Source: Octopus sinensis (taxonomy: Eukaryota). From it: DNA of 64,000 nucleotides. The notes beneath the pieces were generated by a model. The model was not told the origin of the DNA. It made no database searches and saw only the letters and a list, made by a program, of their open reading frames with translations. The position numbers and the translations under genes were made by a program. Every line of letters begins with the position of its first letter. Position 1 is the stretch's first letter. Location: assembly GCF_006345805.1 (NCBI RefSeq), contig NC_043002.1:55490001-55554000 (forward strand). The letters are read 5' to 3'. Positions 987-55,431 of the stretch are shown here, one piece after another.

Positions 987-3900
987 CGGTAAATCCAGGA
1001 AAAGTATCGTATCAACCAAGTAATAAAGCGTTTGTTTTAAATAACAATAAAATATGGCATCAGATGTGGGAGTGAGTTTAGAACAAGCAGCGGGATAATG
1101 ACACTCTGTCTGTATACGTTTGGCAGGGGCACACAGCCTATCATATTCTCTTTTCCTCTGATTCTTCAACACAGTAACATATTGACTGAGGGTTGCAGAC
1201 ATATTGGATAGAGCAATCTGTAATAAAGTATTGTGAGAAGCATGAATTTTATTCGACAATGATTGAGATTTCTTATAAAATATAGAATCGAGTCTAGACA
1301 GAAAGTGTATAAATATTTCAAGAAAAGGTGTTTGATAATATGTCCATACCTTGACTAAGTCTGTCTGCGCGATGGTGATATTGTGTTGAATGTAGAGCTG
1401 AGGGAATGTAAGTTCTGTCCGGTTGAGTAGCATATGAATAAAGTGAGGACAGCTTACCGCAGAAGCCATTGGAGTGTTGTGGCACTGTAGAAAAACACGT
1501 GACATATTATGAGCCTGAGATTTGGACAGATAGGATTAGAAAACAACGGAGTAGAAGTCCGTTTACATGGAACTAGTCGTTATAAATATTGATATTTACG
1601 AGAACATTATTTATATGATAGGTAATATATTATTGGAGTGGCATAACAAGAAGTGATAATAATAATAAAATAAAAAAATTAATAACAATAATAGTAGTAG
1701 TAGTAGTCGTAGTTGTTGTTGTTGTAGTAGTTGTAGTAGTAGTAGTAGTAATTATAATTATAATAACATTAATAATGCTAATAATAACAACAACAACAAC
1801 AACAATAATAATAATAATAATAATAATAATAATAATAATAATAATAATAATAATAATAATAATAATAAAGATGGGCTACAGCAAATATTCTGCTCAATAT
1901 CACAGATTTGCTTGTCAGTTGTTTGACCTTAACCAGTTGAGCATGTCCGTTAATGGCTGACGATATGTGCATCTCTGATTAGAAACAGAAGAAATGGGGG
2001 AGCATCATATTGAAAGGAATTTTTAGAGGTTTGGATAATTCACCTTTGGAAACAGGGGTGGTTCGTAGAACATCCTTAAACAATCCTTATTCAGGGACCT
2101 TTTGAGCAGGATGGGTTACTTGACCGGAAGAAAATTCTAACTGGGCCCCACCTGTAAGTTCATGCGCTGTTTATCTTGTTATGAGATCACCATGTCACGC
2201 ACATATGGTTGTGATGCATGTGCCTGGTGAACACTTATCAGTCGGGTAGTCATGATACGTATACTGGGCTTCGTTTATGTTACCCCAGTGTTACGTTGAT
2301 GGCATGCACTGCTCTAACACTCAATGATGATGATAATAATAATAATAATAATAATAATAATAATAATAATAATAATAATAATAATAATAATAATAATAAT
2401 AATAATAAAAGAAGAAGAAGAAGAAGAAGAAGAAGAAGGACAACAACAACAACAACAACAACAACAACAGCAACAACAAGAATAACAATAATAATAACAA
2501 TAATATATGAATGAATAAATGTAAACTTACAAAAGAATGCAAAGTAGTGTTCACGGCTATTGAGGCCCTGCGAGCCGCCTCCAGCTGAGATTTTATGTTA
2601 TTTATTGGTATCGCTGTAGGTTTTATCGATGCTCCTTGGATGAATGAAGTCCAGACTGAGATACATAGGACCAATACATATTGCCAGTCTACGGGAAAAT
2701 GGAAAAAAATACCATTAAGGAACATTTAGAAGGAAAGGGAGACATTGAAGGAATTGTTATTATTAAAAAGAAATAACTCGATAAGTCGCTGTTAGTTTTT
2801 CACGTGTAGTAAACAATGAGCTGAACATTTTGGAACTCAATAAACGATATTCACAAATATTTAACATATTTCCACTAAATATAAACCATAAGTTCTTGTG
2901 TAGTGTGTTAAAGAGAAGTGAATAGATATTTGGCTGAGTGGAGGAAGGCCACGTTTTAAGTGTTTTGTTGTTGTTTTGTTCTACCATAGGAATTGAGTGC
3001 GATAAGTAAATAATAGAACTAAAAACAATGTACTGCAATGTTGTATTCAGCAGTGATAAAAATAGAAATATTCAAATTAGGGAAAGATGCGATATTTTAT
3101 ATATGACAGGAAAGACGAGGCTATTTAAAAGCACTTATACACATATATAGAGGCATATCAAGATATATATATATATATATATATATATATATAGATAGGT
3201 AGATAGAAAGAGATAGATAGATAGATAGATAGATATATAGATAGATAGATAGATAGATAGATAGATAGATAGATAGATAGATAGATAGATAGATAGATAG
3301 ATAGATAGATAGATTGTCCGGGATATACATATATATACATATGTGCATGAAAGATTTTGTGCGTTTCTGTGTGCATGTGTGTGTGTGCGTGTGTATGTAT
3401 GTATGTGTGTGTGCCATTGTCCCTCCCCCTTGAGTTCCGCTTGACGACCAATGCTTGTAAATTAACAGTTCACTAAAAATTTAGCAACAGAATAAGTACA
3501 TAGCTTTCAGAAATAAATCATCAGGTTAGTACATTCGGCAAAAAATTCTTCATGGTCGTGCCACAGCATCGCCGCAAACTAGCGACTAGAACAAGTAAAG
3601 GCAGAAGATATATATATATATATATATATATATGTATATATATATATATATATACATACTGTTGGAAAGACGATTACTTTCTTGTATGTTTTTAACAATT
3701 ACTTTTTCATGACATTATAACCTTTAATCTACTCAAGATATTCTTGGCCTGAAGTTTAACCGTCGGTATACGCCTCATTTCGATTTACCATTTATGAGCT
3801 TTCAGTCGCCAGGAAACACATGTAGCCCGGATTTTCCTTCTCCATTCTGTAATTCTTGTATTGTTTTTGGTAAACTCGGCAAACCTTGTCGCCTACGGTG

Positions 3901-4192
3901 GAATATAAAAACAAATTTTCTCCTCGCATCGTTTTTCGATAAAGAAAAATAATCCTCAACCTTCCGTCTCAATACACCACTATTGTTCTGAAAGTTGTTT
4001 TCTTATATTTACTGCGAATTGCTTGAAGCTAACTGTCTTCCTACACCTCGATGTCCCGAATTTACACGTATGTGTCCGTGTGTGTTTCTATGTATGTATG
4101 TGCTTATGTATGTATGTATGTATGTAGTGTATGTATGTATGTATGTATGTATGTATGTACATAATGCCGACCTCATACTTACAGTTATTCAT
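987..4192 (-). CDS. Putative IL-6/G-CSF-like secreted cytokine, copy 1 (exons 1-4; exon 5 not found in window)
   Basis: E1 4192-4183 (ATGAATAACT|gtaagt), E2 2688-2531 (cccgtag|AC...TTT|gtaagt), E3 1484-1350 (ctacag|TGC...AAG|gtatgg), E4 1217-987 (ttacag|ATT...CCG|gtaaga), all in frame. Exon 5 is expected near or beyond the window start; bases 1-200 do not match it and 362-1000 look noisier than in the other copies. Confidence 0.72.
3430..3595 (-). mobile_element. Old degenerate SINE relic in intron 1 (also in intron 1 of copies 2, 3, 6 and at ~40560-40730)
   Basis: Diverged match to the younger SINE body at 63310-63460 (GGACTTATT...GTACTTATTC...GCCGAA...CAAGCG pattern). Confidence 0.5.
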
Positions 4193-54800: not shown

Positions 54801-55431
54801 ATATACATATGTGTGTGTGCATATGTGTCTATATTATTATTAGTAATAAATTCATATATAACATATGTGCGTATATTATTAGTATTAGTAAATGTGATAT
54901 ATAATATGTGTGTATAAATGTCTCTATAGTATTGAATGTAGGGAGAAATAGCTACCTTGACCATGTTTAGATCTCATCCACGTTGGGTTAACTATAGATA
55001 AATAATATATAATATATATATATATATATATATAAATATAATATATATATATATATATATATATATATAATATATATATATATATATTATATATATATAT
55101 ATATATATATTATATATATTATATATATATATATATAGCTTTATAAGGTGTGACTGTGAGCCCCGGTAGGTTTCATTGCATGTGTATCGTGTGTGTGTGT
55201 TTGTATGCGTGTGTGTATTAATATCAATTAATGTGTATCTCTTATTTACAATGTTCTTTTCATATATTTCAGATATTTTCAAACATCAAACAAAATGTCG
55301 AAGTGGATGACAGTCTTTTGCTACCGGATGATGTGCCAATAACCAAGCAGCGATGGTTTACCATAATTACACTCCATACACTTCATGAAAATATAAACCA
55401 CATTCAAAATACTCTACAATCCTTTATGTAA
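51845..55431 (+). CDS. Putative IL-6/G-CSF-like secreted cytokine, copy 6 (complete, 230 aa)
   Basis: E1 51845-51854, E2 53348-53505, E3 53789-53923, E4 54056-54286, E5 55273-55431; all GT-AG and in frame. AATAAA at 55649-55654. Confidence 0.82.

Follow-up and report, generated by a model that had tools for sequence, protein, structure and literature searches.

A repeatedly duplicated, cephalopod-only gene cluster in Octopus sinensis with predicted helical-cytokine-type products

Introduction

Which unit has been copied, and what might it encode, in a stretch of the Octopus sinensis genome where one gene recurs on both strands? The window analyzed here is the whole 64,000-nt stretch CM016864.1:55,490,001-55,554,000, which an initial annotation had described as at least seven paralogues in head-to-head inverted pairs, proposed to encode an immune or signalling ligand. 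Our analysis presented herein shows that the cluster in this stretch is real, having arisen through repeated duplication of a cephalopod-only gene. A literature search on helical cytokines in cephalopods and molluscs and on the LOC identifiers found no paper on this gene family.

Results

Copy inventory

By tblastn and DNA alignment across the 64,000-nt window, a five-exon gene is present in six copies, c1(-), c2(-), c3(+), c4(+), c5(-), and c6(+), which are local rather than dispersed (Table 1). Copies c3, c5, and c6 are intact, and two others are defective: c4 is without promoter and exon 1, its homology beginning within intron 1 at 34155, and c2 is without the exon-1 splice donor, the GT of which is abolished by a 2-nt deletion (ATGAATAAC--TAAGT). 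The frame nevertheless remains open in c4 and throughout exons 2 to 5 of c2. The splice sites of c5 are canonical, intron 4 of c3 is of the GC-AG type, and exon 5 of c1 falls outside the window, beyond its start. Annotation in the window covers one of the six or seven copies, namely c6; exact look-up of LOC118763923 (P0001) gave no position, and the c5 product has no entry in public protein sets.

A seventh, plus-strand promoter arm (c7) stops at its own TATA box, CTATATAAGCCG at 17304-17315, exactly at the first assembly gap. No c7 exons are visible in the O. sinensis window, and there is no coding sequence beside the gap on either its left or its right side. From 17416 onward the sequence is 98.8% collinear with O. 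vulgaris L005, where the match opens 583 nt past the stop codon of a complete plus-strand copy. Because this right flank is collinear with the tail of the O. vulgaris copy, the gap is estimated, against both O. vulgaris and the paralogues, to conceal ~4.2-4.9 kb and would contain all of the c7 exons, if c7 exists, with 17416-17862 as its probable tail. The six gene bodies stand in the orientations originally given, and the seventh member of the proposed set is suggested by a promoter and a 3' flank.

Table 1. Features of the cluster, in window coordinates (E, exon).
Feature	Position	Strand	Details
c1	987-4303	-	TATA 4292-4303; E1 4183-4192 (ATGAATAACT, then GT); E2 2531-2688; E3 1350-1484; E4 987-1217
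c1 long upstream arm and segment X	4304-6381	-	arm to 5827; X 5824-6381, repeated inverted at 14621-15175
c7, upstream part only	14621-17315	+	X' 14621-15175, then long arm from 15281 to TATA 17304-17315
Assembly gap 1	17316-17415		100 N, between c7 TATA box and fragment of (+)-copy 3' flank
Right of gap 1, non-coding	17416-17862	+	17642-17862 resembles (+)-copy 3' flank ~0.5-0.7 kb past stop codon
c2	22533-25611	-	TATA 25600-25611; E1 25501-25509; E2 24274-24431; E3 23869-24003; E4 23507-23737; E5 22533-22691
Inner junction, pair 2/3	26407-26482	+	end of short c2 arm (~830 bp), 35-nt spacer, start of long c3 arm (~1.76 kb)
c3	28217-31869	+	TATA 28217-28228 (CTATAAAAG); E1 28328-28337 (MNY); E2 29863-30020; E3 30322-30456; E4 30589-30819; E5 31711-31869
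c4, 5'-truncated	34155-36269	+	E2 34297-34454; E3 34797-34931; E4 35064-35294; E5 36111-36269
c5	45508-48494	-	TATA 48483-48494; E1 48374-48383; E2 47491-47648; E3 47003-47137; E4 46640-46870; E5 45508-45666
Inner junction, pair 5/6	49220-49988	+	pair-2/3 strings kept, 728-bp insert between them (49241-49968)
c6, LOC118763924 (XP_036359805.1)	51734-55431	+	TATA 51734-51745; E1 51845-51854; E2 53348-53505; E3 53789-53923; E4 54056-54286; E5 55273-55431
Two 3,024-bp copies, 99.5% identical	56882-63029	+	56882-59905 and 60006-63029, adjoining gap 2 (59906-60005)
Solo upstream arm	57627-59189	-	without TATA box, E1, or gene; kept in O. vulgaris

The inverted pair as the unit of amplification

The copies had been read as three divergent pairs with TATA boxes about 13, 2.6, and 3.2 kb apart, and the measured distances are 13.0 kb (4303 to 17304), 2.6 kb (25611 to 28217), and 3.24 kb (48494 to 51734). 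The inverted arms are asymmetric (~0.83 kb vs ~1.76 kb) and ~88-90% identical. Pairs 2/3 and 5/6 do share the inner junction proposed for them, as GAAATCCTTAGATCTACATAC is present exactly at 26407 and 49220 and ACAATTCCCATACTAATATG exactly at 26463 and 49969, with 0 occurrences of either string expected by chance; ACAATTCCCATACTAATATG is also found with two mismatches at 15281, at the start of the c7 arm. Two open reading frames rich in His, Pro, and Thr (16506-17058 and 25815-26369) lie in the arms; these were rejected as coding sequence, being read off CAC/TGG microsatellites.

An independent assembly of O. vulgaris contains 1:1 orthologues of c2 (L005_47864p), c3 (L005_40240m), c5 (L005_1648m), and c6 together with both junctions, that of pair 2/3 at L005 45760-45835 with the same strings and the same 35-nt spacing, and that of pair 5/6 at L005 5388/6151 with a spacing of ~740 bp. 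Inverted arms with a unique breakpoint are thereby seen in at least two pairs and again in a second, independently made assembly. Since the junctions and the orthologous pairs are both present in O. vulgaris, the pairs are real and the pair is the amplification unit. At least 18 copies extend across at least 280 kb in O. vulgaris, mostly as head-to-head pairs, including extra pair copies and some pairs in which one or both promoters are deleted. The c5/c6-type pair occurs three times there, and the c5-type and c6-type clades have three members each with matching topologies, all of which, along with the shared and retained junctions, agrees with the original proposal that duplication acted on a whole pair whose members were inverted beforehand. 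Part of the difference in copy number between the two species may reflect assembly collapse.

Elsewhere in the window, the c1 region is collinear with O. vulgaris L003 at 96.5%, and no close orthologue of c4 was found in O. vulgaris, the nearest copy being L002_6252p. Collinearity with O. vulgaris also predicts another minus-strand copy ~2.7 kb past position 64000, as had been anticipated beyond the window end. The O. bimaculoides loci, which are ~25% N and have two tandem copies only, are therefore silent on the age of the pairs.

Reliability of the assembly

Paralogues differ by ~8-12% in non-coding DNA and by 3-7% in exons. With paralogues ~8-10% apart and the O. sinensis and O. vulgaris orthologues of c2, c3, c5, and c6 only 0.5-1.3% apart, most of the duplication represents a burst well before these two species split. 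The same distances bear on whether the inverted copies are assembly artefacts in the form of haplotigs, fold-back chimeras, or collapsed or expanded repeats, a reading that we regard as highly improbable. The window does have two gaps, and the 3-kb sequence duplicated at gap 2 is single-copy in O. vulgaris, which makes that duplication an assembly artefact. Moreover, at ~32566 the 3' flank of c3 changes to the flank of an oppositely oriented, convergent neighbour in O. vulgaris, so that the c3/c4 boundary is a possible mis-join and the placement of c4 perhaps artefactual. Relative to c2/c3, both the c1 block and the c5/c6 block are oriented differently in the two assemblies, each of which has a gap at a critical place, and the O. 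vulgaris copy number exceeds that of the window. Against an artefact, the divergence of the paralogues is far over that of haplotypes, four copies each have their own close orthologue, both junctions are conserved, and 17416-59905 is a single gap-free contig. It follows that artefact covers gap 2 and perhaps the placement of c4, and does not extend to the pairs.

Gene structure, selection, and distribution

What recurs is a TATA-driven gene with coding exons of 10, 158, 135, 231, and 159 nt and intron phases 1, 0, 0, 0. Its 230-residue product has five N-X-S/T sequons and six mature cysteines (57, 68, 130, 140, 146, and 159), four of which are invariant in the family. The putative signal peptide has its hydrophobic core at residues 7-20 (Kyte-Doolittle ~2.5), beyond which lies a G/A-S/P-I-x-P motif that relatives also conserve, and the product is predicted to be secreted and N-glycosylated. 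Open reading frames of 184 residues were rejected as single exons, each spanning a 132-nt in-frame intron that is open in 18 of 21 copies. This intron is not coding, because dN/dS there is 1.14, and the family-wide dN/dS (ratio of means) of 0.38 in the exons, together with pairwise values of 0.17-0.57, indicates that the exons are under moderate purifying selection.

Members of the family were found solely in Octopus, Argonauta, and Acanthosepion (21 matches among 1.84 billion representatives). The orthologous families of Argonauta and cuttlefish are 28-53% identical and conserve the cysteines and intron positions, and the positions of introns 2-4 are kept even in paralogues that are only ~30% identical. 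These properties bear on the notion that the repeats represent a mobile element, or an array of pseudogenes in decay, without host function. The window is indeed rich in Tc1/mariner remnants, SINE-like sequence, and microsatellites, and several copies are defective, but the unit is a gene of five spliced exons, encodes a signal peptide, keeps its frames open, has no transposase, LTR, or TIR, shows the above difference in dN/dS between exons and in-frame intron, has relatives in Argonauta and cuttlefish, and is copied locally. We consider this notion extremely improbable.

Predicted fold

AlphaFold2, run with 15 sequences, returned five models all with pLDDT of 80-85.5 (best 85.5, pTM 0.78), with helices predicted at 32-59, 97-135, 153-175, and 201-229 and long AB and CD loops. 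The product is thus predicted to fold as a long-chain, up-up-down-down four-helix bundle of the IL-6/G-CSF/LIF/GH type. When the PDB was searched with Foldseek, long-chain class-I helical cytokines made up almost all of the ~45 best matches, headed by G-CSF, LIF, PRL, GH, IL-27, CLCF1, IL-11, CNTF, and IL-6, with target-normalised TM scores of 0.6-0.79 and probabilities of ~1 for the best of them (G-CSF, LIF, and IL-11). The E-values are weak (0.016-1), and the fold claim therefore depends on the predicted model. Among viral proteins, the only high-probability fold matches were bovine gammaherpesvirus 6 Bov2.b3 and HHV-8 K2, the viral IL-6. Similarity of sequence or profile to any cytokine family or solved structure was not found in Pfam or among PDB sequences: Pfam gave only noise (Cbl_N, AIP3, Med15_C) with the spliced and unspliced products and 15 family members, and a profile search against all PDB sequences gave 0 matches at E<=10. 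A saposin-like assignment was rejected, as the prosaposin-like repeat matches represent a short local motif (profile positions 29-84), no family member matches Pfam SapB, and the fold matches are to cytokines and not to saposins.

Discussion

Origin of the array

The cluster has the features of birth-and-death evolution that had been proposed for it: intact, selected copies lie beside 5'-truncated, donor-less, and promoter-deleted ones and a solo promoter arm, probably left behind by a copy since lost, and copy content differs between close species. As judged from the sequence comparisons, the array most likely arose in three steps. A unit with a long (~1.8 kb) upstream arm would first have been copied in inverted orientation, with a breakpoint ~830 bp upstream of the TATA box, giving a divergent pair with promoters 2.6-3.3 kb apart. 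Whole pairs would then have been copied by segmental duplication, through recombination, unequal or non-allelic, among the abundant repeats, with the unique junction carried along. Finally, partial duplications, deletions, and point lesions would have left the dead or crippled c4 and c2, the solo arm, and the promoter-less pairs of O. vulgaris. The trees of gene bodies and arms are star polytomies in which (c2,c5) and (c3,c6) are not recovered as sisters, and they give no independent confirmation of the order of duplication.

Amplicons of head-to-head pairs or inverted duplications include the divergently transcribed histone pairs and palindromic ampliconic genes. The octopus unit is likewise an inverted pair with promoters facing away from each other and copied as whole pairs, and its inverted arms would make new inversions and deletions more likely, a view that the disagreements between the two octopus assemblies suggest. 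In contrast, the octopus promoters are 2.6-3.3 kb apart and do not form one shared bidirectional promoter, and unlike the arms of classical palindromes, which are kept near-identical by conversion, those of the octopus, at ~88-90% identity, show no sign of such upkeep. The initial annotation had likened the cluster to the IL-17-like expansions of cephalopods. These share with it the local, recent, and species-variable growth of a secreted family, but IL-17 has a cystine-knot beta fold, whereas the octopus family is all-alpha in the predicted model and has no match to Pfam IL17. The families are unrelated and the analogy is confined to evolutionary mode.

Comparison with helical cytokines

The vertebrate long-chain class-I cytokines (IL-6, G-CSF, LIF, IL-11, CNTF/CLCF1, and IL-27p28, with GH and prolactin) are likewise secreted glycoproteins of ~200 residues, and by prediction the octopus product forms the same type of bundle with long AB and CD loops. 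Exon layout also corresponds, in that octopus exon 2 encodes the signal and helix A, exon 3 the AB loop, exon 4 helices B and C, and exon 5 the CD loop and helix D, which is the layout shared by GH and IL-6 genes. The octopus family differs in its mollusc host, in its 7 to at least 18 local copies, and in the spacing and location of its cysteines (57/68, 130/140, and 146/159), which appear unlike the IL-6/G-CSF pattern. The plan of one signal-peptide intron and three domain introns agrees with that of IL-6 genes (PMC13081863), with modest specificity. Since phase-1 signal-peptide introns with phase-0 introns are common among secreted proteins generally (PMC1626468), the exon plan is suggestive only.

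In molluscs, IL6R-like receptors, JAK, and STAT have been found and an IL-6-type ligand was not detected in a 2026 survey (PMC13203501), according to which Drosophila Unpaired (Upd1-3, the ligands of Domeless) are the sole well-established invertebrate ligands of a class-I-type cytokine receptor/JAK/STAT. No search revealed a sequence relation of the octopus family to Upd, and no solved Upd structure was among the fold matches. The Upd proteins are secreted glycoproteins from clustered paralogues and are about twice as long as the octopus product.

Possible function

We think it probable that this is a real, lineage-specific amplified cluster with secreted products of the helical-cytokine type that would act as extracellular signalling ligands, and the ligand role originally proposed accords with the signal peptide and sequons as well as with the fold predicted for the product. 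The products may act on the molluscan class-I cytokine-receptor/JAK/STAT module. More tentatively, and with the balance tilting against it, the genes could be true, extremely diverged homologues of IL-6/G-CSF/GH that retain an ancestral five-exon 1-0-0-0 plan and represent the missing ligands of an IL6R/Domeless-like receptor-JAK-STAT pathway. It is also conceivable, though we rate it as rather doubtful, that the secreted four-helix protein is real but does not act on class-I receptors, serving instead in reproduction or as a pheromone, as a product secreted by salivary tissue or skin, or as some other factor outside the cell, with its likeness to cytokines convergent or too remote to matter. 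The absence of sequence similarity to cytokines and the apparently differing cysteine pattern would fit such a role, and rapid local amplification under no more than moderate constraint (dN/dS in the observed pairwise range) is a pattern that pheromone and secretory-gland families typically show as well; in salamanders, proteins with a cytokine fold are reported to have been recruited to reproductive tissues (10.1101/2022.01.04.475003). Conversely, long-chain cytokines that bind receptors account for almost all of the fold matches, the exons map onto the helices just as in the IL-6-type plan, and an orphan receptor module exists in molluscs (PMC13203501).

Significance

The cluster is a clear case of amplification by the copying of divergent gene pairs rather than of single genes, and the locus marks places at which the public assembly of O. 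sinensis cannot be relied on. Because just one of the window copies is annotated, expression studies that use the current annotation would miss the family. To our knowledge, the ligands of invertebrate class-I cytokine receptors/JAK/STAT are essentially unknown outside insects (Upd), and a cephalopod-only secreted family with a predicted IL-6/G-CSF-type fold and a matching exon plan is a concrete candidate ligand for molluscs. If its members are true homologues, the origin of the long-chain helical cytokines would move back to the bilaterian ancestor, and cephalopods would have undergone a specific burst of ligand diversification through the amplification of inverted pairs.

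Organization of the Cluster

The window corresponds to 55,490,001-55,554,000 of O. sinensis chromosome CM016864.1 (GCA_006345805.1), as located by an exact protein match. Self-comparison of the window (G+C 34%, with abundant microsatellites throughout) confirmed that it is made up of long repeats that are 84–95% identical and lie in both orientations, and an ORF listing combined with tblastn placed the same coding exons in six copies, c1 to c6. As represented by the O. sinensis RefSeq models P0001 and P0002, the true gene structure comprises five coding exons (E1 to E5), of which E1 carries only ATGAATAACT, and CTATA[T/A]AAG TATA boxes sit ~100 nt 5′ of the ATGs. 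The initial annotation, which described at least seven paralogues in inverted pairs, is upheld with respect to copies, orientations, spacings (inter-TATA distances of 13.0, 2.6, and 3.24 kb) and junctions, the two junction strings being exact at their positions with none expected by chance. It requires correction in that c7 is represented by a promoter arm only and that c2 and c4 are defective.

Features of the window (window coordinates)
Feature	Position	Strand	Remark
c1	E1 4183-4192 to E4 987-1217	-	E5 outside window
c2	22533-25509	-
c3	28328-31869	+
c4	34297-36269	+
c5	45508-48383	-
c6	51845-55431	+	identical to XP_036359805.1, LOC118763924
c7, promoter arm	15281-17315	+
TATA boxes	4292-4303, 25600-25611, 48483-48494	-
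TATA boxes	17304-17315, 28217-28228, 51734-51745	+
Intron-1 in-frame ATG stretches	29805-29862, 34239-34296		in c1, c2, c5, c6: 36 nt 5′ of E2
Assembly gaps 1 and 2	17316-17415, 59906-60005		100 N each
Tc1/mariner	21275-22159	-	open 294-aa ORF, HTH_Tnp_Tc3_2 + DDE_3; in c2 3′ flank
Tc1/mariner, decayed relative of 21275-22159 element	42035-42721	-	between c4 and c5
92% copy of flank of 42035-42721 element	63399-64000		window end; Tc1/SINE landmark of the initial annotation

The public protein sets contain c6 only and not the spliced products of c3 or c5. A 274-aa minus-strand gene model covers all 23.6 kb of locus L001 (window 41845-65431) and overruns both of its ends, and c5 has no public annotation. 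The public gene models over the cluster are probably chimeric or incomplete.

The conspicuous 184-aa ORFs consist of E3, intron 3, and E4, where intron 3 is 132 nt long and in frame (e.g., 53924-54055 in c6 and 46871-47002 in c5). No stop codon interrupts this intron in 18 of the 21 copies from the two species, and its divergence (4.3%) is below that of the other introns (8.6–11.8%). Its dN/dS is 1.14 vs. 0.38 for the exons, which marks the 132-nt stretch as an intron, and the 184-aa ORF was rejected as a single coding exon for this reason; any constraint would thus lie at the DNA or RNA level, in the form of splicing signals or conversion tracts, and not on a peptide. Intron 3 is wrongly kept in some O. 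vulgaris gene models (P0005 and P0009). The His-, Pro-, Thr-, and Gln-rich ORFs of the promoter arms (16506-17058 and 25815-26369) are not genes but result from translating (TGG)n/(CAC)n microsatellites, a repeat that is a conserved component of the arm.

Inverted Pairs in Two Octopus Species

Four O. vulgaris loci (GCA_951406725.2, OX597819.1, 73.97–74.25 Mb) were compared with the window and contain at least 18 copies, again for the most part as (−)(+) pairs. In a maximum-likelihood tree of gene bodies c2, c3, c5, and c6 have 1:1 O. vulgaris orthologues that are 0.5–1.2% divergent, with paralogues ~8% apart, and a tree of the arms (the upstream regions) agrees with it. The junction between c2 and c3 has an identical 35-nt spacer in O. 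vulgaris and that between c5 and c6 has the same ~0.73-kb insert. It follows that the inverted pairs are genuine and predate the species split, and the possibility that they are fold-back or haplotype artefacts, raised in the initial annotation, is not borne out. The further claim that an already inverted pair was duplicated as a unit is also sustained, as the junctions are common to both pairs and to O. vulgaris, where the c5/c6-type pair is found three times with c5-like and c6-like clades that are congruent in topology. In some of these O. vulgaris pairs an internal deletion has removed one promoter or both. The basal branching of both trees is star-like; only the shared junction orders the early events.

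We propose that a single inverted duplication with its breakpoint ~830 bp 5′ of the TATA box would have generated a divergent pair whose arms were unequal, 0.83 kb on the short side and 1.76 kb on the long side. Recombination between repeats may then have multiplied whole pairs, in a burst before the sinensis/vulgaris split, after which single copies decayed. Copies c1 and c7, together with their relatives in O. vulgaris, retain the long arm and an extra segment beyond it (segment X), and may represent an older type of unit. The evolutionary mode put forward in the initial annotation, birth-and-death expansion, was largely right, with pairs copied as units and intact copies beside decayed ones. 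The minus-strand copy that it expected past the window end agrees with collinearity with O. vulgaris, which predicts a (−) copy ~2.7 kb beyond 64000.

Condition of the Copies

Copies c3 (in which intron 4 is GC-AG), c5, and c6 are intact, as is c1 within the part covered by the window, and comparison of the window copies in pairs gives dN/dS of 0.17–0.57 at dS 0.06–0.15. In c2 a 2-nt deletion in E1 (ATGAATAAC--TAAGT) removes the GT donor and leaves an in-frame TAA, with the reading frame of E2 to E5 still open. Copy c4 starts within intron 1 at 34155 and is without promoter and E1, and an upstream arm at 57627-59189(−) stands alone, lacking a TATA box, E1, and any gene. All copies have an in-frame ATG within the last 36–58 nt of intron 1 (MFLN... 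or MSP...), so a transcript begun inside this intron could still encode a protein with the hydrophobic signal; such a start might be important for c4, which has no promoter, and for c2, which has no E1 donor. A 46-bp tandem unit repeated three times at 22434-22569 re-copies the last 11 codons and stop of the c2 final exon into the 3′ UTR, and tblastn matches the 11-residue C-terminal peptide of c2 three times there.

Of the copy placed in gap 1 by the initial annotation (c7), the window shows a promoter arm. At the head of this arm the right-arm start string recurs with 2 mismatches, and the arm ends in ...CTATATAAGCCG, followed by N; neither edge of the gap adjoins coding sequence. The first stretch to the right of the gap (17416-17641) is unique sequence resembling a SINE, and the next (17642-17862) matches the 3′ flank of the (+) copies, ~0.5–0.7 kb past the stop codon. 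From 17416 on, the window is collinear with O. vulgaris at 98.8%, beginning 583 nt 3′ of the last exon of L005_55477m, a complete copy in matching orientation. With a promoter arm on the left and distal 3′ flank on the right, the two sides are not continuous, and therefore ~4.2–4.9 kb, a whole gene body, is missing. The arm and flank are present, exons were not observed, and we soundly infer that c7 exists.

Assembly Discrepancies

The two 3,024-bp blocks that flank gap 2 (56882-59905 vs. 60006-63029) share 99.5% identity, and a single-copy stretch is their common counterpart in O. vulgaris (L005 13002-16007, L002 25187-28206). The duplication is hence an artefact and almost certainly reflects overlapping O. 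sinensis contigs that the assembly left un-merged. The c3 flank changes at ~32566 to one that a convergent neighbour has in O. vulgaris, and c4 is without a close orthologue, its best relative being L002_6252p (~94.5%). The c5/c6 and c1 blocks differ between the two assemblies in orientation relative to c2/c3. Either a real inversion or mis-scaffolding may account for this, as each assembly is gapped there (L005 27587-27686 in O. vulgaris and gap 1 in O. sinensis).

At L005 21451-32352 two pair modules face each other in a large palindrome centred on that gap. One side has copy Y(−) and a c6-like E2 that reaches into the gap, and the mirror side has a c6-like 5′ end and copy X(+). Copies X and Y are sisters, 3% apart, and the palindrome represents either a genuine duplication or the product of a fold-back error in assembly. 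In O. sinensis a single contig (1-17315) carries c1(−) and the c7 arm(+) head to head, together with two X segments in opposite orientation (5824-6381 and 14621-15175), and in O. vulgaris (compared at locus L003) the c1 orthologue, a near-identical neighbour (copy Z), and the copy beside c2 all run in the same direction. This difference could be due to a real inversion, to comparison of different copies, or to mis-assembly.

Protein Family and Predicted Fold

The product is a 230-aa protein. Its N-terminus is hydrophobic, sequons are present at five sites (N50, N77, N91, N106, and N120), and the mature part has cysteines at 57, 68, 130, 140, 146, and 159. No Pfam family or PDB sequence was matched, and use of a 15-member profile did not alter this. 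When 1.84 billion representatives were searched exhaustively with a profile, 21 proteins were matched, with named matches from O. sinensis, O. vulgaris, O. bimaculoides, Argonauta hians, and the cuttlefish Acanthosepion pharaonis; three long saposin-repeat matches were rejected as relatives, having only a short motif in common. Divergent paralogues (~30–40% identity) occur elsewhere on the same chromosome (3.84, 55.35, and 58.31 Mb) and keep intron positions 2–4.

AlphaFold2 reached pLDDT 77 with six sequences and 85.5 (pTM 0.78) with 15, all five models lying at 80–85.5. Four long helices (32-59, 97-135, 153-175, and 201-229) are predicted, connected by a long AB loop with short helices, a short BC loop, and a long CD loop, and this predicted layout is that of a long-chain helical cytokine. 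For both models, almost all of the top ~45 Foldseek matches in the PDB are G-CSF, LIF, prolactin, GH, IL-11, IL-27p28, CLCF1, CNTF, IL-6, and IL-12p35. Target-normalised TM is 0.6–0.79 for the best (G-CSF, LIF, and IL-11) and 0.4–0.55 for prolactin and GH, with a probability of ~1 yet E-values of only 0.016–1. Among predicted viral proteins the only high-probability matches are bovine gammaherpesvirus 6 Bov2.b3 and HHV-8 K2, the viral IL-6.

The intron phases are 1,0,0,0, and E2 encodes the signal peptide and helix A, E3 the AB loop, E4 helices B and C, and E5 the CD loop and helix D. GH, EPO, IL-6, and G-CSF have these phases and this helix-to-exon mapping in common. Phases of this kind are, as one source indicates, also common among secreted proteins (PMC1626468), and the exon plan supports the likeness to cytokines but is not decisive.

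The initial annotation's "signalling ligand" was right in spirit, given the predicted helical-cytokine fold and hydrophobic N-terminus, and its comparison with IL-17 is an analogy only. Membership of the class-I cytokine superfamily was tested by sequence and not found, so assignment to it is not justified; that the octopus product may work like a class-I cytokine is the best-supported hypothesis. No description of the family was found in the literature searched. We propose that the products would be extracellular ligands of the helical-cytokine type. IL6R-like receptors, JAK, and STAT are all present in molluscs, where no IL-6-type ligand has been detected (PMC13203501), and this receptor-JAK-STAT system is hence the obvious candidate receptor module for the octopus products.
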